A stretch of DNA of 64,000 nt from Podarcis bocagei (taxonomy: Eukaryota), in NCBI GenBank assembly GCA_964188305.1, contig OZ076892.1. One strand, written 5' to 3'. Both the position numbers and the translations under genes were made by a program. This document shows, piece by piece, positions 16,155 through 39,700 of this stretch (positions are counted from its first letter, which is position 1; each line of letters starts with the position of its first letter). Under the pieces are notes generated by a model. That model was not told where the DNA came from, searched no databases, and saw nothing but the letters and a program-made list of their open reading frames with translations.

Positions 16155-16290
16155 GGAGCCAGTGTGGTGTAGTGGTTAGAGCATTGGATTAGGACTTGGG
16201 AGACCGGGGTACAAATCTCCACTTGGCCATGAAGCTTACCATGTGACCTTGGGCAAGTCCTTGCTACAGGCATCCCTCTTTCAACCAACC
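16155..16290 (+). mobile_element. Old tRNA-derived (MIR/CORE-like) SINE
   Basis: gggagccagtgtggtgtagtggttagagc…gtgaccttgggcaagtc; similar remnants at about 40-160 (minus) and 10700-10850. Confidence 0.6.
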
Positions 16291-16718
16291 TTTCAAAAAT
16301 CCTTATCCCAGTGGTTATCTGTCCTCGATCTGAACTGATGCTGTTATTTTAAACTGTATAGTTATTGTTGCTTTTAAAAATTCCTTTAATATGCAATTGT
16401 TTTTGACTGTCAATTCACCCTGGAAATAGCAATGAGGTCCTTACCCTTGGACGTGCCTGGTTATTATCATTTGCAGTAGTAGTATTAAAATTATTTATTT
16501 TCTTATTACCCACCCTTCACCAGCACTGTGAGATGTTTTAGTTATGTCCAATAACTTGGAGAAGACACTCTGAAGCTTCCCATTCTCCCTGCTCTCTCCC
16601 CCAGCCTTGCTCTGTATAGTGACTGAGGCAGCTTGCACTTAAAGCTAAAAATTATAGAAATCATAGAATTGTTAAGTTGGAAGGGTTCCTGAGGGTCATC
16701 TAGTCCAACCCCCTGCAA

Positions 16719-16858
16719 NNNNNNNNNNNNNNNNNNNNNNNNNNNNNNNNNNNNNNNNNNNNNNNNNNNNNNNNNNNNNNNNNNNNNNNNNNNNNNNNNN
16801 NNNNNNNNNNNNNNNNNNNNNNNNNNNNNNNNNNNNNNNNNNNNNNNNNNNNNNNNNN
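16719..16858. other. Assembly gap (140 N)
   Basis: Run of N, flanked by a CR1-type tail fragment and a Sauria SINE. Confidence 1.
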
Positions 16859-16881
16859 ACCATGATATTCCAGGAGGGTTA

Positions 16882-17238
16882 AAGGTAAAGGTAAAGGGAC
16901 CCCTGACCATTAGGTCCAGTCGTGGCCGACTCTGGGATTGCAGCACTCATCTTGCTTTACTGGCCGAGGGAGCCGGCGTACAGCTTCCGGGTCATGTGGC
17001 CAGCATGACTAAGCCGCTTCTGGCAAACCAGAGCAGTGCATGGAAACGCCGTTTACCTTCCCACCGGAGCGGTACCTATTTATCTACTTGCACTTTGACA
17101 TGCTTTCGAACTGCTAGGTTGGCAGGAGCAGGAACCAAGCAACGGGAGCTCACCCCGTCGCGGGGATTCAAACCGCCAACCTTCTGATCGGCAAGTCCTA
17201 GGCTCTGTGGTTTAACCCACAGCGCCACCCGTGTCCCT
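16882..17238 (-). mobile_element. Sauria SINE
   Basis: Same core as the 4561 copy; 14-bp target-site duplication TTCCAGGAGGGTTA at 16868-16881 and 17239-17252. Confidence 0.88.
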
Positions 17239-18339
17239 TTCCAGGAGGGTTAGAACAACTTAAAATAAGTTAAGGCAACTGCGCTCAAGAGCTAAGGTGG
17301 GTCCTAAAACTTGTATCCTCAACCGGTAGCTTGGCCAGTGAGCTGCATCTTCAGTACAGGAGGAAAGCTGCATAAAGGTGGTGCCAGGTGGGGAGGGATT
17401 TCCACAGCTTTGGGGCTGCCATAAAGAACTGGGCGGGTGATGGAACTACCAAGAGGCCCCCCCCCCGCCAATCTTAATGTCCAAGAGGGTGCAAATATAA
17501 GGTGGCTGTGCTTCAGATACTGGAGCCTAAGTCGCTGAGGGCTAAATAAGGGAACGAACTGCTTCCACATAACGGCATTAGCAGGTAAATGGATCAGGCA
17601 GACCTGGAACTGCAATTTCATTTGTGCAAAGCCAAACCCTCTTCGCCCCTCCTGGTATCATGCATGGTGAATAGCGAGCGGGGTCACTCACTGCCCCCAT
17701 CTCCTTCTTTTATCACAAGTGCATTTTCAGCCTCTGTGATATGTTCTGAAGGAGTGAGGTCTGTGGCAAGTCTTTGCACAGCCAAGCCATCTGCTTCCCA
17801 TCTTGGAGAGCAATTGGGCTCCAAAGGACAGTACGTGGGGGGGGGGGTTAATTTAAAAAACACACACCAAAACACCAAAAACTTATTGTATTTATATCTC
17901 ACCTATTTCTCTAGGGAGGTTAAGGTAGTATAAACCTTTTAAGTGGGGATGTTTATCCCAGTCTGCATCTCTACTGGAACTATTTTTAAACACGGAATTG
18001 TGTTGTTGTTTTTTAAATGTGCATTGTTTTATGTAGGGAACTGTTCTGTTTGTTTTGTAATTGTATGTTTTATTGTTGCGAGGCAACTTGGAGCCTTGTG
18101 GTAAAGGACGGTCAAGAAATCGAATTAATTAATTAAATACTGTTGTTGTTGTAAGGCGGGGAAATACAATTAATATGCTTTGCCATTGGAATTTGATCCA
18201 TAAAACAAAAACCAACCCCCCCCCACCCATACATAGAGATACTAGGTTATTGCAGGAGACTCCAAGGCCCAGCAGACCTTCTGAGGAAGAGCAGACTGAG
18301 AGAAAAACTCTTTGACATACTTTGTCTTTTCTTGTTGAA

Positions 18340-19290
18340 TGTTCCTAGGAATAGTAGAAAGATAAGAAACAAAGGTTTGGGGAACAGATATCACAAATGG
18401 AGAGAGATCCGTTGGAATGTAATGTTAAAGTGCTGTCTAAAATGTATAAGTTATTATTGGACTGGGAAACAAAGGATGGGCAAGTAAAATCTTCAGTGAT
18501 ACATTGGGCAATAGATATTGGTTATAATATAGATATGGAAGCATGGGAACAATTGTGGAACACGCATATAAAATTTACAGCATGCTATGGTTTCAGAGAA
18601 AACTATATGAAAATGTTATATAGAATGTATCTAACACTGAGTAAACTGGCAAAAATATATAAATCAAAATCAAATAAGTGTTGGAAATGCAAAGAGAAAG
18701 AAGGTACTTTCTATCATATGTGGTGGTCCTGGCTAAAGCTTGCTGGGAAATGATATATAATGAATTGAAAAAGATGTTTAAAATAACATTTGTAAAAATA
18801 AAATAAAAACAGAAGCTTTCCTTCTGGGAATTATAGGGGTCGAACTACCTAAACAGTATAGAAATTTATTTATGTATGCGACTACAGCGGCAAGAATGTT
18901 ATTAGCCCAAAAATGGAAAGAAGAAGTCCCAATGAAAGACGACTGGATACAAAAACTCATGGGCTATGCAGAAATGGCAAAACTTACTGGAAAAATAAGA
19001 AATCAAGACAACAAACTTTTTATAAAAGAATGGAAATGGTTTACTGAATATGTACAAATAAATTGCATACAAATAAGGACATTGGCAGGATTATTGTAAT
19101 GACCTGCAGCTTCATAAGAGTAAATAATTCAAGCAGATGAATAAAAGAATCAGAATATGCAGGAAATAATAAATAGAAATTTAAGGAACCATAGAAAGAG
19201 GAGGAAGTCGAGTTTTGAAATGTTAAAATATTAAAATGCCTGTAAAACTATTGAAATGTATATAACTGAAAATTACAAAAAAAATAATTA
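18340..19290 (+). mobile_element. 5'-truncated L1/Tx1-type LINE, ORF2 C-terminus (degenerate)
   Basis: AT-rich. Zinc-knuckle KCWKCKEKEGTFYHMWWS and TAARMLLAQKWK motif in broken frames; A-rich 3' end. Confidence 0.8.
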
Positions 19291-19599
19291 AATGTTCCTG
19301 GGAATAGTGTGGGATCATCCCCTATTCAATCTGCCTCATCTGTGACTCAACAAAGGAGTCACAGGAGAAGATGTTCAACTGAACAGAGTTATCCTTCCCT
19401 CTCCTTCCCTTCCTTCCTCTCTGTCTCTCCTCCTTCCTCCTCTTTTTCCAAATTTGATGCCCCGCCTGGATTTCCTCTCTGGTCAGCGTGAAGAAACCTC
19501 CAGGAACAAAGAAGTCTAATAAAAGGATGTACCCACATTTTTTGAAAAGTATAATTTATGGAACATAATTTATTCAATTTACAGTATATGGGATTATTA

Positions 19600-20440
19600 T
19601 TTACCTCATATATCTGAAATTTGTCCTACAGTGTGGAATGGGTTTCTGTTGCTTAAGCTTACCGTAATTTGTTCCCACATATCGTAACACATTATTAGTA
19701 ACTTCTTAGGATTAGCTCCAAGACTCCCTATTCCCCCCCTCAAATTTATCTAATTCTAATTTAAGCATTGATAAAGCTTTCCATTAATTAGATTACATGC
19801 ATACCATATAACCAGCACAGACGCTTAATAAATCCCCAGTAACCCTTCATACGTGGGCTTAGATGTAGTGCAATTGCTAATGGTTACAGGGAAAGGGGGG
19901 AGAATAGGGGAACAAGAGGCAACCTCAATTTGCTCTCCTATGAATGTGAATAGGGTTTTAATTCATGTCGTTTGTGCGGACAGAGGCCTAATGAAAGGTG
20001 ATGACAGGCACAGCATCTCTTCCTGGTTTTGGTATAACAATTATTTCTGATGTGGACCAAGCACTTTGGAAGGATACCACTCCTCAAAACGTCATTTAAC
20101 AGCAAAATTAAAGAAGGCATTAAAGTCTCCTGAAAAGCTTTATCAAAAGCGCTACCAAAGCCGTCTGGTCCTGGTGTTGCTTTATGCCCCATTTGAATTC
20201 CTGAGTGATGTTGGATCTTGAGTGTAAGTACCAGCTTATTTTTTGCTAATGGCATGTCTTCATTGGCAGACATTGCTTGGCATATTTCGTCAGTGGCGTA
20301 TCTCAAGTTCCACTGGCCTTGGGAGGCTTCTGACAAATCCTATGGCCACTTGGCCAGCAAAACCGAAGTAAATGATTTGGAATTTTGCTTGTTCTTCTAC
20401 TTCCTCTTTCCTTTCATGCCTCTTAATTTATAAGCATAAG
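19600..20440 (-). mobile_element. Degenerate L1-type LINE fragment (ORF2, start of RT region)
   Basis: KATPGPDGFGSAFDKAFQETLMPSLILLLNDVLRSGILP resembles the K.PGPDG motif before the LINE RT domain; frame is disrupted. Confidence 0.7.
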
Positions 20441-22200
20441 AGAAAGGACTGCTCCTTCTAAAATCTTCATAAAAATGTGGAGAAAATTGTAGGACCAATA
20501 AATAATAACAATTTAATCTTTATTACACTTACACCCTGCCTTTCTTTCAATTCTTCTTCTTTATTCCATTACTATTTAAAATTAAGATGACAGGAATAAT
20601 AATAATACCTTACTTGTTTTGCATTGGCCTGGAGAAGTGCTTCCACCAGATCACCCAGTCTGGGGTCTTTTACTTAAATACCACTCTGGTGGTCAAAGTG
20701 GGTGAGTAAGTAGAGGCTGAAACCTTTCTGTATACTCACAGTGCCCTCTTGTGGTGGCCAAGTGCAGCGCTTCTGCCAACCATGTTAGCTTGAAACCAGT
20801 TTATAATATAAAGCAACAAACCTCGTTCAGAAGTTGAATGGTGGGCAGCCGTTCTTTGTGCACCGATGTGGAAAACCTCTGCTGCTGCTATCTGCACATC
20901 AGCTTGCTGTTAACAACTTCATGGAGAAATCTCTGCTATGGGGATTTAAAGACAACGTCAAGACAAATGAGGACCAGATCCTGGTTAGTCTTTCGATATA
21001 ATACAGTGGTGCTCATGTGTGAGTGTCTGCCTCCTTCTACTTACTCTTGCAGCACTTTCTCATGTTCCAGGAGAGCACCTTCCTCCAGGGCTAGGGTCTC
21101 GGTCACAGGAGGGTAAAAAGCCTTTACCAAGACACTTAGCCCAGAGGGCAGAGTTCCATAGGTCCAGCAGACAGAATCTGTCTAGGTCCAACATGCGATG
21201 TAGAAGCAAAGTCAGGAAATGGTCCACAGGGAGTTCAGGGGGGGTGGGGGTGCCAAAGCCAGGAACAAGGAGCCAGAGATCTGTGTTATTTCTGGCAACT
21301 GAAAGGCTCAAAGGGCAGGAGAGGGGTCTTATATACTCTGGCCTCCTAAACCACTCTCTAACCACAAATGCTGGCAGTGAAGGAGCATCAAGGCTTTCAC
21401 ATTCACAAGTAGACTGGGGGCCTGGTTCTATAAAGGCAAGCTGTATCGTTGCTCTTCAATCTGGACCAAAAGCTTTTGGCACCGGTGCTCTTGAGGACTG
21501 GGGCGGGGCAGGGGGCGCTTTCACCTCTTCTGACGGCTCCAAGGGTTCTTAAGCAGGTATCTCACCAGGGGCCCTCCTCATCACTTGTTCCAGGAGCCTC
21601 TGCCTGCTCCTCAAGGCCCTCAACCTGTGGGGCACCTGGTTTGCCTTCTGAGGAAGCTATGTCTGCCATGAGGTCAGGACTAGGCATGGCACTCTCCTGC
21701 TACTGTGAAAGGGGGACTGGACAGACCCTCCTCTGTTTCTGCACAAGGAAAATGGCTTCCTCTGTTTTCACAACAACACCCTCCTCCGCTCCATGTTTTA
21801 TTGCAAATTTCTGCTCTGAATCAAAACAAAGGGCAAAAGGCCATAAAACTGAGCTCTGATATTCGAAAGAGCTTCAGAGGCTTGAGTCCTGAGAATACCT
21901 GCTCCCAAATGAACCCTTACCCTGCCAGAATAAATGAGACTTGCACAATGGAGGGCAGTGCCACCTGCGAGAGATGTTCCTAGGGCACAAGCACACGCCC
22001 TTCACTTGGTCCCACATGCTGAATCAACTGTGGCCTGCTTCCATGTGGTGTGTCAAAATACTCCAGGCTTGCCAATTTGCCCTTAACCCTTCCCCCAAAG
22101 GGACTTGCCAGGCAGACTTTGCTCTAGCTTAAGTTACCTGGGTTGCCATCCCTTTGCCAGAGTTTTGCAGAAGGCAAGGAGCAAGAGCTGAAGCAGGACA

Positions 22201-25200
22201 ATGTGCTTCTTTAGGGTCAGCCTCCTGCTCTTCCTGGTTCTTCACTCTCAGGTAGGATTGTCCTCCAAAGAGCAAGCGAAGCGGGGCAAGTATCTTTGGT
22301 GTTGTAGAAGGATCTTCTTGGCATTAATGGTGGAGGGGCTGGGTTAAGTGTTTTGTAGGTGCAGAAGAGGTACCAACACATGAACCCACTTGATCACACC
22401 AGGCCAGGCTCTTCGTCCAACTAGTGTTTATTAGTAGCAATTCCCCAAGGCTCCAGGCAGTGATTTTGCTGTGCTGCTGAAACCAGAAATCCTTAAGGAT
22501 GGCAGCGGCTGGGTTTGAATCTGGGAATTCCTGCATGCAAAGTACAGGTGCTGTCCCCCAGCTGTGTTGCCATGGCCTTGTGGAAGAGCTGGGGTGTGGG
22601 GATAAAGATGAAGAGGAGCATGAACAGAGTGTGGGGGAGATGTGACCACCGAGTGAGCATGGGAAGGTTACTGGGCTGAGGAAGGTTTCATAATATTGGG
22701 CTTGTGTCTCTCTACACTGTACTCTGCTGGCAGCATAGTTGTTCAAAGCAAATAGGTTTCGAGAAAATAAGAGCAGTTGACAATGTTCCAAACTAATGTT
22801 GAATCAGCAAACATGCATTTCCTTTAAAAACAACCACCAGGGAGCACAAACCTTTAAACTGTAAACAGGGACCTTGAATCTTCCATGGGCTGCAAAGCAT
22901 CTAGCCTTGGAGAGGGATCAGATAACACAAATAAGGCTAGCCCAAGGGGTCAACAAGATGTTGGCCATGGGTGTGGGAGCCGTGGCAAGGCCTCTTGGCC
23001 CATCTCTCCTTTATCAGCTCTACCCTTGAATACTGCTCAATAGAGGCTGCAAAACAGACTGGTTGCTACCTGTGGCAGGAAGTGAAAGGACTTCAGGTAA
23101 ATAACAATAATGCAAACCCAATACTGACATTTAAGATAGAAGGAAGATACTCTTGACATAGAGGTGTGTCCAGATTCCAGGACGTGTCTTCCTTCACATG
23201 TTCCAGGATGGAATTCTGAGGTCCAGCACTGTCCTGTCCCGAGATCCCTACAAATCTTAAGGAGTGCCAAACTTGTCTTCACATAGAAGACGCCATGGGA
23301 TTGGGCTCTGAATGAGGGTTTTTTTAAAAAATAATGCAACTCTCTTTCCCCCTTGCAGGTCTCATTCCTATTTGCTTGGGCAGAAGTGCTGACCTTTCCA
23401 GAATCCAGACTTGATCTGAAGAGGCAGAAAAGGGATTTGCAACTTCTGCCTCCAATATTGGTCATGGAGAATGGCATCGGTCCCTACCCCAAGCGTCTGC
23501 TGCAGGTATAGACAGAGAGGGCAACTGCCTCTTTCTCTTCATGTGCCTTGAACAGCTCAGAACCACTATGCTTGGAGGACTTCTTTTCCTCCTATGAACC
23601 TGCTCAGAATCCCTCTCTGTGTTCTACCTCTGAGGGAGGCATAGAGGGAGGCAACAAGAAAACAGACCTTCTCAGTTTTGACATGTTCATTTGCTACCAG
23701 GCAGGTAAAGATGGCATGACTTTCTACAGTGTCACTGGGACTGGTGCAGACAGACCTCCTCAAGGTATCTTCATCCTTGAAAGAGAGACAGGCTGGCTGA
23801 TGGTGACCATGCCATTGGACAGAGAGACCAAAGACAAATACATTGTAAGTCCCTTTGTGCTAGCTTCTGCCACCCTGGAACCTCCCAGCACCTCTTAAAA
23901 CTGCCTTTGCCAACCTGGTGCCTTCCAGATCCTTTGGACTACTGCTGCCATCAGCCCAAGCATCATATAGCTGTGCTGGCTGGAGCTGATGGGACTCGTA
24001 GTTCAAAACTGCTGGAGAGCACCAGGTTGAGGAAGGCTGCTACGTGTTATGGGGCAGGGAAAGAGTGGAAATCACATGTTTGCTGCTGCTTTATGTCAGC
24101 TTTTGGGGAATCCCCGGGAAGCAATAGTATTAGCAACCATTATTTATGGGAAGGAGGAGAAAGTTCAGCTTAGTTTCATTTCTGAATTCTCAGCATACAG
24201 TATCTAAATACTTTTTAGCCCCTAATGTAAATTCCTGGGTGCTCTCGGTGTGAAGAGAAGGGCAGCTCTACACTCTTGTGGGAAGGTGTCTGGGAGGGTG
24301 AGAGGCAGCTTTGGGGAGTGTCTCAATTGCTACCCTGCTTGCTCTGCAGCTCTTTCTTCACGCTGTAAGTGCAACTGGGCAGCCTGTGGGGAACCGCACA
24401 GAGATCGTCATCAAGGTGCTTGATCAGAATGACAACAAGCCCCGTTTTACCCAGAGCATCTTCCATGGCTCCATAGCAGAAGGAGCCCCGCCAGGTACGT
24501 GTCTGTCTGTCTGGTTGCACATGCATGAACGAACTGACTGTATGGAAACCCCTAATATTTGCCTCTGAATGCCCATATCCTTTGGCCATTCTTTATGGAA
24601 GGAGAACCCACAGGGGGAGGGGGTATAATATTGTGTGCAAAACCCAGGCCCCTAACTGTGCTTTTTTCTACCTGTATGGCCTGGGCAGTCACTACTGAGC
24701 CCACCATAACTTGCGGACTGGCATAAAGGCAGTGCAGATCGCACCCAGCTGCTGCAGTTTGCAGAGGCTAAGAGGTAATTTTGGAGCTGTCTGGGGCAGA
24801 GTCAATTTGACCTCCAAGCTGGGATGATCTGGCTATGTTGCGGGTATGTGTGTGATGCACTTCAGAAGCTGAACTTTGGACCTTTGTGGCACACGCACCC
24901 AGGTACCTTTGTGACACAAGTATCAGCCACTGACATGGATGACGCTGTGAATTCCTACAATGGGGTAATCACCTACTCCCTCGCTATCCAGACCCCCACA
25001 AAGCCACAGAGCCAAATGTTTGCCATCGATAATAAAACAGGGGTCATCAGCTTGAACAAACCAGGACTTGACAGAACGGTAAGTGGCTGGGTCCTGGCTG
25101 TGTAGGGAGAGGGCATGATTAATGATGCTAATTTCCCCTTTGAGGCAACCCTTGGCTCTGCTGCTGTGCTTTACTCCTAGTGGAAACACTGGGCCATAAG

Positions 25201-26265
25201 GCACTGGTGGATTAGAGGCTAGCTGGGGGGGGGGGGACCAAGCAGGATGGGGAGGGGCTTGCAAGGGATTTCTGAAAGAGAAGAGGGAAGGCTTTGAGTC
25301 TGGAGCAGATGAACAGCATGACTGCCGCCTTCCAGTATCTGGAGGGCTGCCCTACAGAAGATGAAGTGGACATAAGCTGTACACATTTAAAGCACATGGC
25401 TTCCTCCAAAGAATCCTAGGAACTGCAGTTTGTCAAGGGTGCTGGGAATTGTAGCTCTGTGAGGGGCAAACTACATTTGCCCAAATCCTTTGGGGGAAGT
25501 CATGTGCTTTAATGGTATGGTTTGCAAGAATTAAGCATTTTCTTTTCACATTTTCCTAATAATAAGGGTGGTCTACCACAGGCATAGGCAAACTTGGCCC
25601 TCCAGATGTTTTTGGTCTACAACTCCCATGATCCCTAGCTAGCAGGACCAGTGGTCAGGGATGATGGGAACTGTAGTCCCAAAACATCTGGAGGGCCGAG
25701 TTTGCCTGTGCCTGGTCTAGCATAACAGCTGTGTCCCATTTCAGTTTGCTGTATCTGGAAGTACCCTAGTGAGTTTAAAGTTTCCTCAAGTTACTTGGCC
25801 AGTGGGGCTCTCAGGATCTTATACAACACTGCTTTGCCATGTGGTGCTTTGATCCCCTTTGCCCAAATGCTGATGGAATTATTTGTTTACAGGTAACCCC
25901 CCAATACACTCTGATCCTGCAGGCTACAGACTGCTTAGGAGAAGGTCTTAGCACTACAGCAACAGCAGTGATCCAAGTAAGGACTGGGAACTCACAAATA
26001 CTCCCGGGTAACCATGTGACTGCTCCTATATCTTCATTTTTGCTCTTGCTGAGGCATGACAGTATTGCCTATTCTCCCACAAAATGCTTGCTGCATTTTA
26101 CTCCAGTGAGAAGTCCCAAGAACTTCAAATGCATATTTTACAGATTAGGCTGAGTAGAGGTGGAGATGGAACCCTCCCCCCTTGCCCTGAAATGAATTGG
26201 GCCCCTTTCTCATGTTTTCAGGGGGCACCCGGTTGAGCCTGCCCTCATGGCACCAAAAGGGTTAA
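22201..26265 (+). CDS. Truncated E-cadherin-like paralogue: signal peptide + furin site + EC1-EC2 only (predicted secreted); 3' end uncertain
   Basis: In-frame GT-AG exons: 22201-22251 ([17 protein letters not shown]), 23359-23505 ([25 protein letters not shown]|[24 protein letters not shown]), 23701-23844 (…[22 protein letters not shown]), 24350-24494 ([31 protein letters not shown]…), 24903-25078 (…[13 protein letters not shown]…GLDRT), 25893-25976 or 26007 ([28 protein letters not shown]…), candidate terminal exon 26222-26265. Exon sizes and phases (51, 147, 144, 145, 176) match classical cadherin exons 1 and 4-7. No stops or frameshifts. Confidence 0.85.
25579..25714. mobile_element. Palindromic hAT MITE (136 bp), in an intron of the cadherin-like gene
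   Basis: CAGGCATAGGCAAACT…AGTTTGCCTGTGCCTG; TSD GTCTACCA/GTCTAGCA. Confidence 0.85.
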
Positions 26266-27413
26266 GACTTTCTGCTGAGTCATGACAGGCAGGCAGCCTG
26301 CCAGTGGAAGGCAAGAAGGAAGTGGAGTCAGAAGGGGCTGCATCAGAAATGCCCCAGAATGGATGAGAGAAACCAACTACCACAGAGGGACGGAGGAGGG
26401 AGACCCCAGGTGGTGAGAGATCCTAGGACGGTGGGTGGGCTCAGCCCAAGAGAAGGGAAAGCCTTCCTGCTTTGGTGTTTCATTGGGAAACTTGGCAAGG
26501 GGGTGGGAATGTATATTTCTGGCAGCTCAAGAAAAACAAGAAGCTTGAATGCCACACTCTTGATTGTCTTGGGGAGTTTCCTGGCATGGGCCAGAAAGTA
26601 AAGGAACTCTGTGGCCAGGGATCAAATGTTTAAGAAGGCAGTGAAATAATACATGGGGCAGGAAGGAGAGGGGCCACTGTTCAGTCCCACCTTCTGGGTG
26701 GAGAGGGGTCATAACTCAGTGTTCTTAGGTTCATCCCCAACATCTCCAGATAGGGCTAGGAAGGACCTCTGTTTGAAACCCAGGAGTACTGCTCTGCCAT
26801 GCTTAAGAGCAGAGGAATGCACTTGTCAGGCAGGGCTTCTCTCAAGAGGCTGGTGTTGTAAGGCACCTGCCCAGGCCCATCCTGACGCAGCCAGTGGGGA
26901 CCACTGCTGACCTTCACTGCCCCTGAACCTCCTCTGCACCTTCATTACTTGCTCACCTGCCCTCTCTGTACAAACAGTGGCAGGCACTATGTCAAGCTGC
27001 AGGGCTACAATTTGGGCAAATGAATGGGCAATGTGGACAGCAGCAAGCAAGCAGGGTCTGCCGAGGGCATCTTGTCTTTAACCCCCCCCTCACCCAGGAG
27101 CCAGCAGAGTTTGTATTTGAACACACAGCTGGTGGATGGGTGAGAAGTGGGTGGGGTGGGGTCCTCCCTCTCTCCCCACAACCACAACACCCCACAGAAA
27201 GCTCCCGTGCACACAGCACCTGGGAGAAAAAGCAAACATTTAAAAACAGGAAAAACTGCTGAGGGCAGCAAGAAAGAGCTTGGAAAATAAGGGCCTGCTG
27301 CTGAGGGTGGCAAGGACATCTTCCTTTGGGAATCGATGGACCTAGGAAACTGGGAGGGGGAGGAGCTCATACAGAGGCTTTTGCTCCACCCGGCTCTCCG
27401 TTCTGAATCCCAG

Positions 27414-28331
27414 GTGGCTAGTTCCGATGAGGTCCACCAAGCTTTCCTGACTGTCCACGCACTGAACGTGCTCACCGGCCTCCCTGCCCAAGGCCTGGCC
27501 ATGCACTTCTCTAAGCTGGAGGACCCCCAACGTCCGTGGGCAGAGCTCATGAGGAGGTAGGAGGGGATGAAGCAAGACAATCTCCCTCCCTCGGTAGGGC
27601 TGGGGCCGTTGCAGTTTCAGCCTCATTTATTCCGTTCCAGCAAGACAAACCCTGATGGGCGCTTGGACAGAAACAGCCCGATGCCCAGGGAGCTGAAACC
27701 TGGCACCTATAAGCTGCGCTTTGAGACGAGGGAGTACTGGGAGCAACAAGGATACCGCAGCTTCTACCCTTATGTGGAAGTAAGTTTGGTTCCCAGATGA
27801 AACTCACACCTGGAAGGGGGGGAAGGCTCCTTCCAACATAGGGAGGACTGATGATGGCAGGGACCACCACTCACTGCCCTTTGAGGGATGTAATTCCTGG
27901 CAGGAGAAGCACAACGTTGGAAAATGGGAGAAATCAGCATAAACTTCACATTATGAAGGCTGCACGCTGTGAAGTCCCTCAGAAACCTGCAGGAAGAGGC
28001 CCAGGTGGTTGGTAGGAGAGCTAGATGTTGTGCATGGGACATCCCTGAAAGAGCACAAAGCCAGAAGTGTGCGAGGACTGGGCACTAGGGGTGCTCCGGA
28101 CCAGGCATTTGGGCCCCTGACAAATGTCTTCTCATGGGCTAGGCCCAGTGCAGCGAAGAAAGGATCTCAAACCAAAGAGCACTACCAACCTCCTGCTATT
28201 CCCCCCTCCCTTGTCTTTACGCATCCTCTTGTCTCTCTGTTTAGATTGTCTTCACCATCACAGAGGAAGAAAAAGTGCACATCCCCTTGCTGCTCAGCCC
28301 CTATTCCTACACCACCTACAGGGGAAGCTAG
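27414..28331 (+). CDS. URAH: 5-hydroxyisourate hydrolase (transthyretin-like protein); three core exons, first coding exon unresolved
   Basis: Exons 27414-27556 (VASSDEVHQAFLTVHALNVLTGLPAQG…), 27641-27779 (KTNPDGRL…GTYKLRFETREYW…SFYPYVE), 28245-28331 (IVFTITEEEKVHIPLLLSPYSYTTYRGS*). Catalytic His, Arg and His plus the C-terminal YRGS signature are present. Adjacent to GAS8, as in mammals. Confidence 0.93.
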
Positions 28332-28952
28332 TGGGAGACCGGCCAGCAGGAGGGGCTGCTTCAGCAAACCGGGGTGCCTGTTCTGAGAGAGATGATGCAG
28401 TCCAGCGGATGGAGAGCTGTGGTTGCATCCACGGCCACCTCTGGCCCGAGCCTCAGGCTGGGGGCTTGGCCATGAGCAGCTGCCTGGTAGTAAATGTGAG
28501 ATTAATCTAAAGACTGATACTTGTAAGCCTCTTGTTTTAAATTGGAGATGCCATGAATTGGGTCTGGGTCCTTGACACACATGTGCTCTACTGATTAGGT
28601 AGGGCTCCCTCAGTTGCTGGGGAACATGAGTGGGGAGAGGGCTGCTGCACTCATGTCCTGATTGTGGGCTTCCCAGAGGCATCTGCTTGGCCACTGTGGG
28701 GAACAGGATGCTGGACTAGGTAGTCCTTTAGCCTGGATCCAGGAGCCAGGCTCTTCAGAGGTGCTTGAGTGGACGCAACATTGGTGTGGAGGACTTTGGA
28801 GGCTCTAGATAAGGTGGGATTAAGGAGTTCAGGGGGTCATTAATCAAGAGGAGGATGCTTTTCAAGTCCCCAAGCTCTGCCTTGATGTGGGTGGGAAAGA
28901 AAAAGGGAGGCTTTGCAGAGACTGAAGACTGAATAGCCCACCACAGGGCCTC

Positions 28953-28958
28953 TTTAAT
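28953..28958 (-). terminator. Candidate GAS8 polyadenylation signal
   Basis: TTTAAT on plus (ATTAAA on minus), about 155 nt past the GAS8 stop. Confidence 0.4.
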
Positions 28959-29111
28959 ACAAATGAGGGCTGGAGCAGACACAATCTCATTCCAGGGGGC
29001 TGCTCTCTCCCTCCCTCCCTCTCCTCTACGGCCACAGCAGGAGCGGGACAGTGGCTTGCTTGCACACAAGGCTTAGGCTGAAGGCATTCCAAAGTATGAT
29101 GTCAGGCTGTG

Positions 29112-32100
29112 CTACGTGGGGGTTGAGACAAACCCAGCAGGGCCCTGGCCCAGCGTGTGGCCGATCACGGAGGTTTCCAGGGGCTTGAAGCCCAAATTGT
29201 CCAAAGGGATCCCAAAGGCTGTGAGCTTGGCCTCGTACGTCCGCAACAAGTCATTGTGGGCCTGCAATGGGAGGCAATTGCAGGTTGAGGAGAGGGATCA
29301 AACATCACATGCCATAACACAGCCACCTAAGGCAACTTCTCTTGTCTATGCTCTGGTAATGCACCCATGGCAGTGGCGGCTGCATCCGTATTTCTCCAAA
29401 AGGATGCAAGAGAGCAGAAAAAGGCCAACTAAAATGGTAGCAGGCTAGACCATCTCAAGGAACAAATGCTTAGAACAGTGTTTCCCAAACGTTTTTGGGC
29501 AACGGCACACCTGCTTACCGGAAAAAAATCTCGCGGCACACCACCATTAAAGCCCCGCCCCGTGACGTCAGCGCGCAGCGTCACGCCGGGAGGGACGCAC
29601 AAAAGTGAACGTTTTTTCCCTCCCCCTTGCCGGGGTGGGAGGAGGCAGCAGAGCGAGGGCAGCTGAGGCGGCGGCGGCAGCTGAGGCGGCGGCGGCTGCG
29701 ATAGCGGGCGGAGGAGGAGCCGTCGCCGGGAGTTGCTGCTGCTGCTGTTGCTGCTGCTGCCCGGACATGCCGGCCTCCTCCTCCTCCGCTGTCTCGCGCT
29801 CCTCCCTTTTGCGCGCGCTGCCCCGCCGCTCGGCACGACCACCGCGGAGCCGCCCCGGCTCGACGCGGATCCTCGCCGCCGCCGCCTCTCGCCGCCGCCT
29901 CTCGCCCGCCTCCCTCCCACGGCACACCAGCCGGTGTCTCACGGCACACTAGTGTGCCGCGGAACACCGGTTGGGAAACACTGGCTTAGAACAAACTTGT
30001 TAATTTAGAAAAATGGGGCTGAAGGTGAATACAATGCAACTTGGTAGGTCAGATGAAGCGATGGCTAGTACAACATTTGTCAAACCCATCAGCCGTTCAC
30101 TGAGATGGGTAGGCAGTGGGCATTAGAAAAGACAGGGGAAGTACTTATTCACATTTCTTGGCATTAACCTATGGAACTCACTGCCACAGGATAGTGAATT
30201 CCTGCTAGCATAAATGGCTTTCAAACAAGGCATAAGTAAAAGCCAACTGCTAGGGAAAATATATTTCCTTCCTGGGTTGTGTCTAAAGAGACCTGCTCTC
30301 TACATTTTGCCCCAACAGACATTCAAGTACAATTATAGGGTTCTCCTCAGCTGGAGCTCTTACCTTGCACACTCTGGCTAGCTCGTACTGCAGATCCTTG
30401 ATGGCATTGTTTTTCGAATCCAGCACATCCTGTGAAAGAAGGTTGTTTGGGCGTTAACACATCAGGCAAGTGAACTGGCCCACAAGGGGACTAGTCAAGG
30501 CCCAGCCAGAGCTTTTGGCCTTTCTTAATGGGCCATGACAGGCCTATGCAAAGTTAGGTGCCCTTCTGCAGCACAGTCTCGTGCTTGGCTCTTTCCTTTC
30601 TGCAAATTCTGCATGCTGAAAGTCCTAATCTGTCTGTTGTTGGCTTCCATGATTTCATTAGGCAGTGCCAATGTATTTCCAAGCCTCTCTACGGCCATGA
30701 GGTTTAGAAACCTGCTATTACAAAATCAGGTAAAACCCGAGATTCTCATGGGTGCTGAATTTTGTATACAGTACTGCATCCCACACTTGGCATAGCAATC
30801 ACAGTGGAGCACTCCATCTACAAACAGGAGCTAATGCGCCTCTTGCCTCCTTGCACAATTTCCTCTTTGTGACTCAAATTAAGGCTCATCTGCGTTGCCC
30901 GCCAGTAATGGGAGATGAGAGCTGTGGGCTGGCATTTCTGCCACCAAGCCATTTTTTGCCCTATTTGGCACAGGAACTGGTGCTACAATACCCAGGGAAT
31001 CCCCTGTGGATGTGCCTGCTGCGCAAGCAGCAGCTGAAGGTAGGAATGTGGGAGGCCTGGTGGAAGGAGCAGCTGCCTCTGGGAAGAATCTCCAGTTACT
31101 GGCGCCAGCCGTGCTTGGAATGTGGAAGCCGCTAACTAAACCCCCTTCCCAGGCAGGCCAAGTCACGGGCGATAACTCTTGTTTCCATCCCATCAGGCAT
31201 TTCAGAGACTGGACAGGACAGGAAGCCTGAAGAGTGAGGAGGCCACAGAGGTCCCTATGGTGGAGAGCCTCCCTTGACTCTTGGGGCTGGAAACACAGAG
31301 GGGAGGGGCCCTGGCAGCATGATGGGCAGCCTCTGCTCCCCAGAAACAACTTGGTGTGCCAGGGGAATGCTTTGAAAGTGCAGATAGCCTTGCTGTGTAC
31401 CAAGGCGCTGTTAGAGAGAACCCAACCTTAGCAAAGAAAGCGGGCAGCTAGGAAATCAGCAACCAGGGAAACCCCATGGAGTGGAACGAGTTGAGAGAAA
31501 GCTGTGTGGCAAGCGATCCCCAAGCCACGCTTGTGTGGCTAGAAGGTTCTGACAGTCACAAGTGGCCGCAGGGAGAGAAGGAGGGAGGCAAGGAACTGAG
31601 AAGGCAGCCAGGAGCTCATTCTCTCTCTCCCTTTCCATCTCCGTTGGAGACTGAGCAGCAGAGCAGGAAACACCGCCCTGGCAACGAGGGCACATTGCCG
31701 CTTCAGTTCTCACAGTTCTCATGCTGCAAAGGGGCACGTGTGCTCTGTGTACTGAACGGATTCTGGGACCAGAATAAATGGCACATAGGTTCAGCAGATT
31801 TGCATGCAGAATCTCTTCCAACTCCACCAGCCAGAGGGAAAAGAAACTGAAGTCTCTGACCACTGGAACGTCCCCTTTCAGTCTGGCTCCTGCACATTTC
31901 CCCTGGCACAGCACCCTCATGCCAAGTGTATTCTCACAGCCAGAAGCACAACAGACACTTGCTGACTGCTTGTGCATTCTATGTCCCAAGAAAGCACCAA
32001 AGAGGCTCAGGTCAGATAGGAAGGGAACGCATTCCCCAGTAGAGCAATTCACCCCACCACTGGTTCAGTCACTGCTGCGAGGGTCCCTTTTGCCCACAGT

Positions 32101-33763
32101 ACTGCCCATGTGACTGACTTCTATAGCTGCTGCTGGAAACAAACACCTCCTAGCAACTTCTAGCCAACCTGAGGCAACTGGAGGCCAGTTGTGTGCGTGT
32201 GCATTCAGAACCTGCTTGGCAAATGGAAATGTTGGTACAGTGGTACCTTGGGTTATGAACTTAATTTGTTCCAGAGGTCCGTTCTTAACCCAAAACCATT
32301 CTTAACCTGAGGCGCGCTTTCGCTAATGTGGCCTCCTGCTGCTGGTGTGCGATTTCCGTTCTCATCCTGGGGCAAAGTTCTCAACCCGAGGTACTACTTC
32401 CAGGTTAGCGGAGTTTGTAACCCAAAGCGTTTGTAACCCAAAGCGTTTGTAACCTGAGGTACTACTGTACATGCTCTGATTGTTTGGAGGGCTGAGGCAA
32501 AGGCTTTTCATGCTGGTGGGCCTCTTGTGCACAACTAAGGGCAGCTCCTCTGAAATACTGCGCAGGCCACATTCATTAATTGCCCCTGAATGAGGGGGAG
32601 TGCTCAGAGAAAAACTAACTTCCCCTTGTCAGGTTGGGCAGAGTCTCTTATTATAGGATGGCTCCCTGCACTTGCCCACACCTTGAGCCCCTGGCAGCCC
32701 CCTTTTAGCCAGTGCACCTTTCTCCTGTGCATTGCAAGGTTTTACCTAGATCTTGCCTAATCCATCTTGGTAATATGAAACCCAGGGACAAACCCCATCT
32801 GAAACAGCAGCAAGAAGGAATCTGACCAATTGTTCTCATCTGGCTTGGGAGCTGTTTGTTTAACTGAAGGGTATTAGAAAAATATCTATAAACTATCTCT
32901 ATAATCCCCATGGTGATTAGAAGCACAGTACCTCCAGCTTGCGGGTGACCACACTGAGAGCACCGGGATCAAGGTTGGTGGCAGCCAGGACCTCGTTGAG
33001 CTGCACCTCCTTCTTCTCCAGGATGTTGGAGAGGCCGAGAAGCTTCCGCTCCAGCAACAAGTTCTTAAAGCCAGTTTTCTGCTGCACCTCATTAATGGCT
33101 TTGGTAAATTTCTGGTACAGGTCATCTCGCTCGTCCTGCACCTGTGCAGACAACCATCAACCCCAGAGTCAAAGAAAGCACTGCTCTGAGCCTTGGCACA
33201 GACTGGGTGCTCCATGAAGCCCCTAAACCAGGTATTCTGTCTGTTAATAAGGCGCTTTGGGTTTTGGTGTGTTTTGCTTGTCCACTGTGAGCACACGGGA
33301 AAGGCCTGGAGATTAGTGGTGGAGCACATGCTTGGCATACAGAATGTCCAAAGTTGCATCCCACACATCTCCAGGGAGGGCTTGGAAAGGTGAAGCCTTG
33401 AGAGCCACTGCCAGTCAGTGCATAGACAAGATGGAGCTGCATGGACCAAGGGTCTGGCTGTGTATTTAGGCAACTGTCTATAGTCCTAACATTCATGCGT
33501 AAAAGTCTTCTTCCAAAAATAAAAAGCCAGCTACCCAATGACAACAGTTGCCCACCCCCTCTGTCACAAACCAACACAGATTAAAATATGTTGCAATGAT
33601 TCCAAAAGTTGCGACTTTAGTGAGTCACAGAGGGAGGAGCAATGCAGAGCTCTGAGGCAGCCCCTCAGGCTATTAGGGAAGGCAGTGGGAGCTGGAAGAC
33701 AGGGCTGGTGGTGATTAGGTTTTTATCAGTTAAAACCATCCTCTTGCATTGTGCTATATGTGC

Positions 33764-33796
<33 letters not shown>

Positions 33797-36700
33797 CGTG
33801 TGCATGTCATGCAAATGCCCACCCACTGCCTTGCTGTGCTCCCATATGCTGACCTTTATCAGGAAGAGTCATGCCCCTGTTTTCAACCCCCGGCCTTGCA
33901 GCAGTCATAGAGGGCAGCTCCACAGAAGCCCCTAGCACGCTTGCTTGCCTCCTCCTCAGGAGCCAGAGAACTGAGGAATCTGCAGCAACCTCTTTCCCCC
34001 ATTTCAGGGATAGAAACAGACCACCCAGCAAGGCATGGCAGACTGGGCCATGGGCTTTAAGCAGCCTCAGGAGAGCAAGAGAATGATGCCTTTGGGGACA
34101 GAAAGGCCTCCTTTCTCTCCCAATGCACTTTGCAAGGATCTGTGGGGGGAGGAGGGATGGGAGGCAGCCTGACCCAATTCTTGTTAGTAAGAGACCCCCT
34201 CATTAAGATAGGACCACTGCAGCCAGTTTTCAAAGGCAGCTAATGAGGTCTCAGATCAATGCTGAATGGCACGCAAACCTGTCCCCATGTCTTAATGAGT
34301 TATACTGAAGAGAGCCTCTCCCTTCCACCCCCCCCCCGAGGAAAGAAGATTCCACCTAAATATTAGGAAGAACTTCCTGACAGTAAGAGCTGTTCGACAG
34401 TGGAATTTGCTGCCAAGGAGTGTGGTGGAGTCTCCTTCTTTGGAGGTCTTTAAGCAGAGGCTTGACAACCATATGTCAGGAGTGCTCTGATGGTGTTTCC
34501 TGCTTGGCAGGGGGTTGGACTCGATGGCCCTTGTGGTCTCTTCCAACTCTATGATTCTATGATTCTATGATGCAAGCTGCCCCTCTCCAGTATCATAGTC
34601 CCCACTTCTTTAAGTCATACTGATGACCAGACCAGCCCAGCAGTAGACATGCTGCTGTTCAGACAAACACAAAGTCCAGCTGCTCAAGCAATCCAAAAGA
34701 ACCGCAAAAATTTACACAGCTAATTTGGAGATGACAGGGAATGCCTATTGCAGGCAGTTTTGGCTCAGACTTGTCCATCTGCTCTAAAGGTCTCATCAAG
34801 AAACAACCAGGACCACAGAATTCTCAAGGCCCAATGGGTGGTGGGTGGGTGGCTATATAGACCTCTCTACCGGATATCTACAGAAAATGGGCCCATCTTT
34901 TTCATCTTGTCCCACAGCCCATCCATCAAATCCAACCCTCTCCCAACTCTAAGTTAAGCCACAGCACAGCAGTGATTCTTGATCCCTACCCTGATGAACC
35001 TTTGCTGCAGCACCTCATGTTCCCACTGGAGATCCTTTAATTCCTTCTCGGTGACTTTCAAACGGGCATGTGTGTGCTGGAAAGGGAAGAGAAGGAGGTT
35101 AAAGCAGCCGCACAGAGTTCCTAGGGCACAGAAGGGACTGATGGGTTTTGACCTCCAAACCAGACAGTGCAAAGGAGAAACTGTAAGAATGGGAAAGTAC
35201 TATGTTCCTCTATCTGCTCCACAGGGACTGGGCATCATTCAAGTTTCTCATCCTGGAAATATCAGCTCAGGGGTCTCTTGCCCCCAACTTCCAGCATGTT
35301 TCATGATCCTTATGGCCCCCTGCCTTCCTCTTCACATAATAACTCAATTGCTCTGCAGTTGTATTTTGAATGCAGTTGAGTCTACTTTTGATTATGGCAA
35401 AACTGTTGTGCATTCAGACACACCAACAACTTTGGTGGAGTGTGCAGCATCAGAAGGGAACAAAACCTAAAAAGACATCTTTGGTTGTGAGTACGTGGCT
35501 GCATGTAAAATCACGAAACTCTCATCTTGAAATACTGATAAAAATAAAAAGCAAAGTGCTGGACAACAACTAGAATGGAAGGCACAGTAACATTTGTCTA
35601 GACTCTAAATGACCCCTGTTAGCACTGAAGGACATCACAGAAAGGGTGGGGCCTAACTCTGGAAATAAAGGGCACATGAGAATAGAGACAATGCAAACTG
35701 CTATCAAAAGTGGAAATAAAAATCTGTGGCATGAAAGTGGGCTGGTGCAGAAATAGCCTAGTGCTGTTCACACCAAACTAGCAGAGAGTCAGTCATACTA
35801 AGTAACCCAGAGTTCATTGGCCAGGACACTCAGGAAGCAAAGGTGAATGCAGAGCCCTGGGACTCACATGCAACATGGCTTTGTCCTTTTCATAGTGCGC
35901 CAGTTTCTTCTGCAGCTCTGCCACCTCTTCACGGGCTCGTTGCAGTGGCTCCACCAGCTTTTTGTTCTGCAGCAGCACTTCAGCCATCTCCTTCTCCAGA
36001 TGATCCTCCTTCTTCTTCATCTCCTCCATCTGCTCCTGTACTCCAAGACACACACAGAGAAAGGAGGCTGTGTGTGCCTCAGGTCCTCAAAAACAGGCAG
36101 CAAGCCCCATCCCACCAGTCCTGACCACCTGTCTGGAACATGCTTCCTCAAACCTCCCATGGGACCCACCACCACCAAGGCAAAGAGAAACAACAGCTCT
36201 GAATCACCTGAGGATAACCAAGGATGCACCCTGACTCATTTGACTGGCCCACTGAAGTGAATGGAACAAATTTCCAAACAAACAAGGTCGCGGTTGACAT
36301 ATAAAATATAGAAACAGACTTTCCCCCCAAACCAGAATGGTTCGTTTCCCCAAATGGGAAACACATGACCTTCAACTACAACAGGGGTTGGTCCATAGTG
36401 AGATGCACAAGAGAGGAGCTCCAGGACTCAAGGTATCCACAATGGCAAAGCAAACAAATGCAACATGTAGTGGCTCTAAAGCAATGGCAGTACAGAAATC
36501 AGCCAAAGCAGAACAAAAAACAAAACATAGAAAGCCCAATGAACACCATCCACTTAGACCTTCCACTACCTGAATCTGGCAACAGGCTGATTTGGGGATG
36601 GTGTCGTGTGGTGCATGTCTTTTACCTTGAGGGTGTTGATAAGTGCCAGGTTATTAAGAGTGACATCGTTGTAGTAGTTCTTGATGTCGCTGAAAGCCTT

Positions 36701-39700
36701 CTCGTGATTCTTCATCAGTGTGTTGATCTGTCCATTCTTCCTCTCCTCAATCTCATGGATTTCAGTTTTCCTGCGCAAGTCTAGCTCGTCGCGTAGGACC
36801 CGCATCTTCTTCTCATACTTGGCCTCGATCTCTGGGGAAGCAGCACCCAGGGCAGACTGAGTGCTCTACTAGGCAAAAAAGTGACAAGGCTATGCATGCC
36901 TCTATCTGTGGGCTGTTCCTCTATGCTGTGTGGAAGAGGAGATGGGGCAAAGTGTTCTCCAGCTCCAACAAGAGGGTGAAGCAAGACTCTAGGCTGACTG
37001 GAAAATGTTGTCACCCAAAGGCACTGGAGGTGCTCAGACTATATACAAACAACTCTGAGCAAAGGATGGGCCCATGGAGCCTGGCATTCTACAAAGCTCC
37101 CGGCAGAGATGGAATACATAGAAGGCCTAGCAAATGGCACTTCTGTGCCTAGCTATTTTGACACATTTAATTTGTTGAGGAGCTTAGAACTGCTGTCAAG
37201 TTCCACCTTATAATGCATGTGGCATTTCAAGTAAGCCTCAGGCCCTGCCCTCGGAATGACTGCAAAACAGACAGGAGCTGGTATGCAAGACAGGTCCTAC
37301 GCAAATCTGTGCTCTCTATCAAGCTGCTACTTAGCCTCAATTACACACAACATAGAGCGGACTCATGAGATGGGCTTTACACACCATTGCTACAAAGTCA
37401 CACACATACACCTTCCAGAAAAGTGAGACTGTGCCATAAGGAAGCAGCTCCCTTGTCACTGCATGTGTGAGAGAAAGGGCGCCCAAGGGACGAAGTGACA
37501 CTGTGGCCCACTGATCCTTCCTTGGGCACAAAGATAGCCTTCCCTTCCAAACCCAAACCCTTCAGCTTTTGGTGGCGAGCCCCAGAACTGACCTTTCACC
37601 TGCCTCTCAAAGTCATTGCGCAATCGTGTTATGTCTTCTTGTTGTTTCTGCCAAGATGATGAAACTGGTTAGTGACAGATGTTGCGTATACTCCTCCCTA
37701 GCTCAGAAGCAAAGCTAAGGCTGGTTTGCTCTGGAGGAACAACTGAGGTTTAAGAACCACCACCCCTCTCTTCCCACCCGCACACCATGCACTCAGCAGA
37801 AGTTGGCCTGAGCCCAGCCCAGCAGCCAAGTCCGGCATCACTTTAGACATACCAGCCGAAGGTTCTTCACCACCATCTCGTTGGACAGCTCCTGCTCCTT
37901 CAGCTCCACCTTCAAGGTGCGCATGTCCTTACGCAGTTCCATCTCCTGGGACCGGTGATCCTTCTGGGCCAGCTTCATAGACACTGTGCTCTCTGCCTTT
38001 AGCTCTGTGATGTTGTTCTGGTGCTCGTACAGCAGGTGCTTCACCTTCTGCTTGTAAACCTGAGACAAAAGGAAGATGAGGCAAGCGTTAGGCCCTCATC
38101 AGCCAAGGTACTCTCTTTTGCAGAGGCCTGAGTAAATGAGAGGTACTTGTGGCTACTCAGGGGAAGGGGATGGAAGTCAGTTGAGGTGCCCCAGCCAGGG
38201 GTGCCAGACCAACCAAGCTGGTGACCAACTCTGCCTGCAGTGCTGTGGCTCCAAGTTCATCAAGTACCAGGAAGTGAAGAAGATTCAGGAGCATGTGAGC
38301 CTCTATGTCTTTATGCCAAAATAACAGACCCTTCCAATGCCATAGCCATTTCCTCACTTTCCATCCACAACATTGCGGGGCTGCCCAAGCCAATATCTAG
38401 CTGCTCAACCACAAGTGGAGGCACCATGGGTCAATGGTTGCAGAGAGCATGTTTCACAGGCAAAAGGTCCCTAGTAAAAGGTTGTTGGGTTAGTACCAAT
38501 GGGAAATGTTTTATTTTACTTAAATACATACTCCATACAAAGCAGCTCATGTTTTTATCACTCACCTGTTAGGGATGCTAGCTGTGATTCCTGCACTGCA
38601 GGGGGTTGAACTATATAACCCTTGGAATTCCTTCCAGCTCTACAATTCTGTGATCTGTGAAGTCCACAGGCTCTTACCTTGATCTCCACCTGGTGACGCT
38701 CTTCGGCTTCCTCCATCTCACGGTCCTTGTTTCGTAGTTCAGCCTTCTTCTCATCCAGCTGCCGCCGAGTGATCTCCCAGAAAGTGTGGATCTTGTCTCG
38801 CTCCAGCTGGAAGTAGTTGCGTTCTTCCCGCTCACGGTCCAGCTCCTCCCGGATGCGGCCCATGTGTTCCTCCAGCTGCAAAGCCAAGAAGAGGGTCAGC
38901 CAACAGTCGGGCTGGAGCCGAGAGGAAGGACTGGGAGCCCACCATCGCCACTACTGGCACTGTGCCTTTTCTGACAGTGAATTCCAAAGCTTTTACTTTT
39001 TCTTTTCAAGCCAAGGTTTTCCTGTGAACTGGCATGGGAAGCATGGCTAATTTCGGAAAGGGTGCAACTGTTTCATTTCAGAATGCATGATAAATAGGTG
39101 AATGAATTATCTGGTTAGAGAGAGGCTTGGCTGCATGAGTCTGTTGCTCTCTGGAAGTGGCTAAATCAGCTTAGAATGTTTAGGGCAGTCTTTGCCAACC
39201 TGGTACCTTCCAAATGTGCTGGTTGTCATCTACCATCAGCTACACTGATGGGTTTGCTGGCTGGGGTTAATGGGAGATGCAGCCCAAAACACCTGGAAGG
39301 CATCAGGATGGCAAAGGCTGTTCCTGTGCAATATTCTCACAATACCTGTACCCAAAAAGTAAAATGGAACTGTGAGCTTAGCTATATTTGCTACCCTATG
39401 GAATGCAGAAGGATGTAGTAAGGAACAACATGGACCCCTGGCAAAATAGTGGCTTCTCCCAATGCTGGTCCTCAGTGCTGTAGTGAAGTGTCAGAGGGAT
39501 GGAAAGAGTGTACCTGCAACAAGCCAGCTGAGGGACTGCATGACTCACACTTGGTCTTACTCCTAGCCAGGAAGGTCGGAGATAATGAGGGTAGGCCAAT
39601 CACCCCATACATCACTCCACCCCAAAATGAGAGACACCTTGACCATTCTCTAATGTGATACAGGCCAGGGGTGGGAAACATGAGTGGCCTGCAGGGTGTT

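Follow-up and report, generated by a model that had tools for sequence, protein, structure and literature searches.

URAH encodes 5-hydroxyisourate hydrolase (HIUase), an enzyme described in the literature as small and as intracellular or peroxisomal. Among the closest known systems to the one reported here are transthyretin (TTR), a secreted homotetramer derived from the HIUase fold, and allantoin synthase (Urad-Urah; PDB: 5Z5M) of plants, diatoms and bacteria, a natural N-terminal fusion to HIUase that still forms a tetrameric core (PMC13751858). Sauropsids retain high liver Urah expression although they lack URAD and no longer have uricase in the liver, a retention left unexplained in that study (Mori et al. 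2023). A second HIUase gene of the coelacanth is treated, in the passage that concerns it, as a coelacanth-specific duplicate, with reference to Forconi et al. (PMC4764851). No paper describing a fusion of cadherin to HIUase appeared in the literature searched, where only incidental gene lists matched and which did not take in Forconi et al. 2014, and the word cadherin is absent from a 2026 review of urate-pathway enzymes and fusions. Here we describe such a fusion in a stretch of 64,000 nucleotides from the lizard Podarcis bocagei (assembly GCA_964188305.1, contig OZ076892.1; hereafter the window), in which six cadherin-derived exons are spliced in frame to three URAH exons.

Cadherin exons are spliced in frame to URAH

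Nine exons on the plus strand between 22201 and 28331, whose coordinates are given one by one below, join into 1116 nt with an open reading frame (ORF) of 371 amino acids (aa). It runs in the order predicted signal peptide, RQKR furin site, first and second extracellular cadherin repeats (EC1 and EC2), HIUase and a C-terminal YRGS, and so reproduces the product that a first reading of the letters (the original prediction) had put together. GT..AG borders were found at all eight introns by checking the sequence. The joint at issue combines the donor ATCCAA/gtaagg after 25976 with the acceptor cccag/GTG before 27414, and both are in phase 0, as had been stated.

Four RNA runs (X1, X5, X23 and X24) were aligned to 23250-28950, X1 and X5 as contigs and X23 and X24 as raw reads. 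X1 is a transcriptome-sized contig set that is 95-99% like the window. A single X1 contig of 340 nt with a depth of 1069.5 joins 25976>27414 (GT..AG), 27556>27641 and 27779>28245, showing that the cadherin-URAH splice, for which matching phases alone could have been chance, is present in RNA. The five cadherin introns upstream of exon 6 are all spliced out in X1 at depths of 529-832. A competing unspliced contig (25949-27382) reaches a depth of 28.5, about 3% of the spliced path; the long cadherin-HIUase form is therefore the dominant form in X1 and not a rare isoform. Cadherin exons were also present in transcriptome-sized contig sets from three studies of one organism, at 0.18-0.29 of words, where the maximum for exons only would be about 0.36.

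We regard a misassembly within the contig set as an extremely unlikely source of the 25976>27414 joint. X1 consists of contigs rather than reads, and only 28+2 letters (the two being ambiguous) lie on the cadherin side of the joint, which would speak for an artefact. These 30 letters, however, equal k-1 at a branch point of a k=31 graph, and the unspliced X1 branch begins exactly where the spliced contig begins. A repeat-driven misjoin is not credible, because the joint falls exactly at GT..AG and only two letters are common to both of its sides; the frame is kept as well, and independent snake gene models share the joint.

A second 5' end encodes a short HIUase

X5, which comes from a separate study, showed a low cadherin depth (4.4) and a URAH contig of depth 21.8 that is spliced 26412>27414 (GT..AG, 52 letters). 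The same joint was found in one raw read of X24. It defines an internal alternative first exon (26359..26412, plus strand), seen in RNA from 26360, which carries an ATG at 26359 and 17 codons in an open frame. Translation from this ATG gives a 140-aa HIUase without a signal peptide, and its N-terminus held no convincing match, judged by eye, to a PTS2 peroxisomal signal. Comparison with Zootoca gave 97-98% identity over the internal first exon vs 87-92% in the intron around it, and the start of a short URAH isoform of Anolis sagrei resembles that of this exon, which is well conserved.

The existence of this independent URAH first exon would suit two independent genes, a mini-cadherin and URAH, with occasional read-through splicing, and so would the unspliced ORF past exon 6, which would reach a stop at 26151. 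Neither AATAAA nor ATTAAA occurs in 25977-27413, however, as had been noted before; only variants such as AGTAAA (26597) and AATACA (26648) are found there. Together with the depth of 1069.5 for the spliced against 28.5 for the unspliced path, and with fused models in dozens of species that conserve the joint, this makes two genes very improbable.

Rather than forming a separate gene that is read through into URAH, as originally proposed, the cadherin exons lack their own 3' end and behave like a second set of 5' coding exons for URAH. In our judgement 22201-28554 is very probably one gene, lizard URAH, with two alternative 5' ends, and we infer that its long form is exported and assembled.

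Exon structure of the long form

The coding part of exon 1 (22201..22251) supplies the ATG and the hydrophobic start of the putative signal peptide in 17 codons and ends at the donor TCTCAG/gtagga. At least about 70 nt of 5' untranslated region (UTR) lie further upstream, and an X1 contig carries 122 letters before 23356, the last 30 of which equal 22219-22248. Exon 2 (23359..23505) is covered by the X1 contig 23356-23507 at a depth of 529.5, and its translation gives the end of the signal peptide (AWA/EV), a very short pro-piece, RQKR and the start of EC1. The core of EC1 is encoded by exon 3 (23701..23844), which matches Pfam Cadherin with 31.1 bits. Its X1 joint was given as 23507>23703 with AT..GC borders, which resolves to the GT..AG joint from 23505 to 23701 once X1 is taken to carry a C>T change at 23702. 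Exon 4 (24350..24494) encodes the end of EC1 with HAV, the DQNDN calcium linker and the start of EC2, and is bounded by the X1 joints 23844>24350 and 24490>24899 (the latter cut shifted by +4); the X5 contig covers it at depth 4.4. Exon 5 (24903..25078, 176 nt) holds the core of EC2, is seen in X1 at a depth of about 830 and in the X5 contig, and matches Pfam Cadherin with 33.8 bits. The last cadherin exon, exon 6 (25893..25976), ends EC2 with ...TATAVIQ and carries the fusion donor, with X1 joints 25077>25892 and 25976>27414.

Intron 6 (25977..27413, 1437 nt) is the intron spliced from the long form, and it contains the internal first exon. Its first letters, 25977..26021, are a degenerate remnant, now intronic, of the tail of the ancestral exon that coded the DxNDNxP calcium site between EC2 and EC3; orthologues with the full exon read VTDxNDNxPIFxPxT, and identity to Zootoca is 84%. 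A 162-nt linker exon (26978-27139, plus strand) had been suggested as an option within this intron. Its frame is open, but the four runs contain no joint at either end of it, neither 25976>26978 nor 27139>27414, and it gave no notable Pfam match. An in-frame ATG at 27336, 26 codons before the acceptor, was considered as the start of a stand-alone URAH and rejected, being intronic, with 27414 as the acceptor used in every run with coverage; the 60-nt bin 27335-27394 is only 60% identical to Zootoca.

Exon 7 (27414..27556) begins at the acceptor common to both 5' ends, with joints in X1, X5 and X24, and encodes an 11-residue linker and the first HIUase strands, including the active-site His in LTVHALN, as aligned to zebrafish HIUase (PDB: 2H1X). 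Exon 8 (27641..27779) encodes the HIUase core (TNPDGR, FYPYVE); its joints 27556>27641 and 27779>28245 are found in X1, X5 and the raw reads of X23 and X24. The coding part of exon 9 (28245..28331) gives HIPLLLSP and then YRGS and the stop codon, within an X5 contig (28245-28554) that extends the URAH 3'UTR to about 28554, with an AGTAAA at 28489. The URAH exons are closest to those of lacertids: exon 8 is 98% identical to the Zootoca protein, and a Podarcis fragment is nearly identical.

Intron 5 contains, at 25579-25704, an interspersed repeat with the look of an inverted repeat, whose depth reaches about 30,000 and 64,000 in contig runs and 60-120 in raw reads. Many of its loose ends lead elsewhere, and it is probably a short interspersed nuclear element (SINE) expressed from many copies.

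State and origin of the cadherin cassette

Exons 3 and 5 match Pfam Cadherin, and the best solved relatives of an orthologue are cadherin-1 and EP-cadherin (E ~1e-97). In the alignment the window retains HAV, LDRE and DQNDN, as in EC1-EC2 of type I cadherins, and also its furin site; the LDRE of EC2 reads LDRT. The full layout of a classical cadherin, with a complete prodomain, five EC repeats, a transmembrane segment and a catenin-binding tail, is absent: about 18 residues separate the signal peptide from RQKR, there are two EC repeats, and no further cadherin exon lies before GAS8. That gene (28783-39246, minus strand, last coding exon near 29110-29260) stands tail to tail with URAH, and the stretch is collinear at 91-94% with the GAS-domain gene of the Zootoca locus, so the cadherin exons cannot run on past URAH.

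Several changes set the window copy apart. After RQKR it reads DLQLLPPI vs DWVIPPI, with Trp2 lost; EC1 is shorter by four residues, PENE has Gly at its second Glu, and there is an extra, unpaired Cys. Five differences from X1 are listed within the cadherin exons of the window, and four of them are synonymous.

These losses bear on an alternative in which this lizard does make the chimeric RNA, yet only as a by-product of a decaying relic cassette with a live promoter, the short 140-aa HIUase from the internal first exon being the working product. The lost Trp2 and PENE Glu, the deleted EC1 residues and the unpaired Cys all point that way, as do the extremely long branch of the window cassette, the good conservation of the internal first exon and the sister lacertid Zootoca, which let the last exon of this cassette die and uses another. 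Against it, the ORF is intact over six exons with perfect splice sites, and HAV, LDRE, DQNDN and the furin site are retained; most of the listed differences from X1 are silent, and the long form stands far above any other form in that set. We consider this alternative unlikely, though the least improbable of those weighed, and keep the reading of one URAH gene with a long and a short product.

The Zootoca vivipara protein annotated as 'cadherin-1' (XP_060132011, 605 aa, locus L001) comes from the same locus by synteny, with GAS8 downstream and the same acceptor (...VASSDE), and its HIUase exons are 96-99% identical to those of the window. Its cassette differs, having a full prodomain and EC1-EC3 with introns that cannot be aligned, yet it is spliced to the same URAH acceptor. 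The flanks of the two loci are collinear at 86-94% identity, whereas between them window 21344-25715 and Zootoca 9223-24298 can be aligned at two exons only (74-79%). At 24476-24560 of the Zootoca locus, farther downstream than the EC3 exons joined to URAH there, lies a dead relic of window exon 6, with its acceptor AG changed to AA and a 1-nt deletion. With exon 6 dead and another cassette in use there, the two lacertids use different cadherin cassettes at one locus.

Grouping of all fused cassettes into one clade apart from the classical cadherins was rejected, since a tree of EC1-EC2 sequences needs 13 label changes. Fused cassettes instead join classical cadherins from their own species or lineage (Elgaria 100/100, Erythrolamprus 100/100, Eublepharis 99/94), and those of carnivores fall inside mammalian CDH1. 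Such pairing suggests gene conversion or repeated renewal, such as repeated partial duplication, and gives no support to a single ancient cassette left undisturbed. The window cassette has no settled place in the tree because of its long branch. The two Elgaria cadherin proteins in the tree are nearly identical to each other.

Two further features lie upstream in the window. About 20 kb before the fusion gene, and head to head with it, the minus strand carries at 182-1918 the exons for the prodomain and EC1 of a further cadherin gene of the classical type, which runs off the left end of the window. With only 59% identity to the Zootoca cassette, it is a different paralogue. A run of 140 N at 16719-16858 is an assembly gap or a masked stretch.

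The fusion occurs across land vertebrates and in the coelacanth

For orthologues of the fusion, URAH exon 8 was searched against 1.84 billion representative proteins. Many long proteins were matched at their C-terminus, and Pfam assigned them Cadherin (PF00028) together with HIUase (PF00576), the combination of domains that had been suggested for a search. A word search with URAH exon 7 limited to proteins of 48-154 aa gave no match, which is uninformative alone but fits orthologues annotated as longer proteins.

Predicted fusions were found in lizards and geckos (Zootoca, Gekko, Eublepharis, Heteronotia, Elgaria, Hemicordylus and Salvator), many snakes, turtles of at least six families, birds of many orders (including pigeons, falcons, a quail, ducks, swifts and the hoatzin), amphibians (axolotl, a newt and frogs) and carnivores (dog, foxes, meerkat and wolverine). 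The coelacanth fusion is a deposited cDNA, Latimeria menadoensis CCT61362 (497 aa, "5-hydroxyisourate hydrolase B"), in which a prodomain, EC1-EC2 and HIUase lie in one transcript. It provides RNA-level evidence from a distant lineage and differs from the window copy in its full cadherin prodomain. A cadherin-HIUase protein of Acipenser sinensis (P0226, 974 aa) is flagged UNVERIFIED_CONTAM; if it is real, the fusion predates sarcopterygians. The event had been tied to a uricotelic animal, a link that fails because the ureotelic coelacanth, amphibians and carnivores carry the fusion as well as turtles, birds and squamates.

The nearest matches in layout are RefSeq-predicted 'cadherin-1-like' or 'B-cadherin-like' proteins of 365-391 aa (371 here), such as those of Crotalus tigris (P0145, 372 aa), Chrysemys picta (XP_005308254, 391 aa) and Columba livia (XP_005504889, 365 aa). 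They share the HIUase exons and the same order of signal, short pro-piece, RQKR, EC1, EC2 and HIUase. In the alignment the joint ...TATAVIQ/VAS... is common to the rattlesnake, other snakes and the window. The position of the fusion next to GAS8 is conserved with Zootoca. Nearly all such predicted fusions retain DWVIPPI with Trp2 and the full PENE, whereas the window copy has neither, and its EC1-EC2 is only 52-64% identical to that of any of them. Over 19 orthologues the furin site, Trp2 (at least 90% conserved), PENE, LDRE and DQNDN are invariant or nearly so, and the cadherin module is therefore under strong constraint in most species.

Taken together, the fusion is an old, overlooked gene that goes by the name "cadherin-1-like" in many land vertebrates and is shared with the coelacanth, and dozens of "cadherin-1-like" entries are URAH long isoforms. 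The architecture is already in public databases as automatic predictions and one coelacanth cDNA.

The enzyme domain keeps its active site, and a complex is predicted for an orthologue

All ten active-site residues, listed in zebrafish numbering (PMC13751858), are present in the window when aligned to 2H1X: His12, Asp50, Arg52, His103, Pro105, Leu107, Tyr116, Arg117, Gly118 and Ser119. They lie in the motifs LTVHALN, TNPDGR, VHIPLLL and the C-terminal YRGS. With single exons as input, exon 7 scored 14.7 bits with PF00576, below the cut-off of 25.3; the Zootoca orthologue, whose three HIUase exons match those of the window at 96-99% identity, scored 115.6 bits. The features of transthyretin, loss of YRGS and an opened thyroxine channel, are not seen, as YRGS is kept and so is position 16 (Val in place of Ile). 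Judged by its residues, the domain would be classed as HIUase and not as TTR.

Active sites have changed elsewhere. In many turtles Arg52 has given way to His, Asn or Cys and the C-terminus is YKGS, and several lizards and snakes end in YRGN in place of YRGS. In the turtle fusions P0034, P0124, P0065 and P0123, Arg52 is replaced and the end is YKGS (or YRES, YQGS), while the cadherin EC1 is canonical (DWVIPPIN). URAH isoform X1 of Pogona vitticeps (P0007 / P0173, 178 aa) joins a signal-peptide-like exon (…ILLLLVLCSHSQ) directly to HIUase without cadherin repeats. Its active site has EGC in place of DGR, and by its sequence it could be a secreted, non-catalytic HIUase. Changed active sites with the fusion retained, as in turtles and Pogona, hint that the fold is perhaps kept for a non-catalytic role.

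A complex was predicted for four copies of EC2+HIUase of the rattlesnake orthologue. Its score was 0.91 against 0.00 for the best of three controls, with partner predicted local distance difference test (pLDDT) values of at least 81; runs agreed in at least 63% of contacts, and the confident contacts all lay in residues 264-372, the HIUase part. In calibration of the tool, the mark was reached by 21 of 30 proteins whose solved structures are pairs of one chain and by none of 23 solved as single chains. The prediction suggests that likeness to the tetramer is kept with EC2 attached; it does not speak to assembly itself.

Proposed mechanism and its meaning

Transcripts thus begin upstream of 22201, cross the six cadherin-derived exons and continue through the in-frame joint 25976>27414 to the three HIUase exons; others begin at the internal first exon (to 26412) and use the same acceptor at 27414. 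We propose that the long form would enter the endoplasmic reticulum through its signal peptide, likely cleaved after AWA, and a furin-type protease would cut it after RQKR. It would then be exported with a calcium-stiffened EC1-EC2 rod on the N-terminus of each subunit of the HIUase homotetramer, giving four cadherin arms around an enzyme core with all ten active-site residues. The short 140-aa form would be an ordinary intracellular HIUase. Loss of Trp2 and of the EC2-EC3 calcium site makes classical strand-swap adhesion unlikely in the window copy, and the cadherin arm is more probably a module for secretion and display.

Several points weigh against the reading of one gene with an exported long form. 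The cadherin-URAH junction was seen in one run of the four (X1), as an assembled contig, and the 28+2 letters on its cadherin side fall short of the 31-letter bridging rule of the alignment method. X1 is from a close relative or another population, as its 95-99% likeness to the window shows. The raw-read runs X23 and X24 have almost no coverage and contain zero cadherin reads. Support for the long form lies at the level of RNA and sequence, and its signal peptide cleavage, furin processing and secretion are predictions from the encoded protein. The terminal branch of the window cassette in the EC1-EC2 tree measures 1.07 vs a median of 0.15, and with this very long branch and the lost Trp2 the cadherin part of the window may be decaying. 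Finally, the complex was predicted for the snake protein and not for that of the window, and since HIUase and TTR tetramers have been solved, the high score may reflect those known structures.

The main interest of the window lies in what the fusion could explain about the retention of URAH in sauropsids. A more far-reaching joint reading is that the long form is the main URAH product in sauropsids, secreted with four cadherin arms; that the chief role for which HIUase is retained is to hold the tetramer together as a scaffold, or to scavenge 5-hydroxyisourate outside the cell; that this is a second route of the HIUase fold to the secretory pathway, parallel to transthyretin; and that the cassette is repeatedly renewed from, or homogenised with, a neighbouring classical cadherin. 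We offer it tentatively, as possible but rather doubtful in its entirety. If true, it would explain the strong liver expression of URAH in uricotelic animals without liver uricase and without URAD, and a conserved, secretion-tagged, cadherin-fused isoform would be a concrete answer to the puzzle of why sauropsids retain the gene.

Comparison with known systems

Like the window fusion, allantoin synthase carries a domain at the N-terminus of HIUase around a tetrameric core. Its partner, however, is the next enzyme of the pathway, and the protein is intracellular or peroxisomal, whereas the partner in the window is an adhesion module with a secretion signal. Transthyretin shares with the product proposed here the state of a secreted homotetramer built on the HIUase fold, and the fusion would offer a living parallel to its origin. 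The routes differ: TTR arose by gene duplication, acquired its own signal peptide and lost YRGS, while at this locus the enzyme exons are unchanged and secretion would be conferred by alternative cadherin 5' exons.

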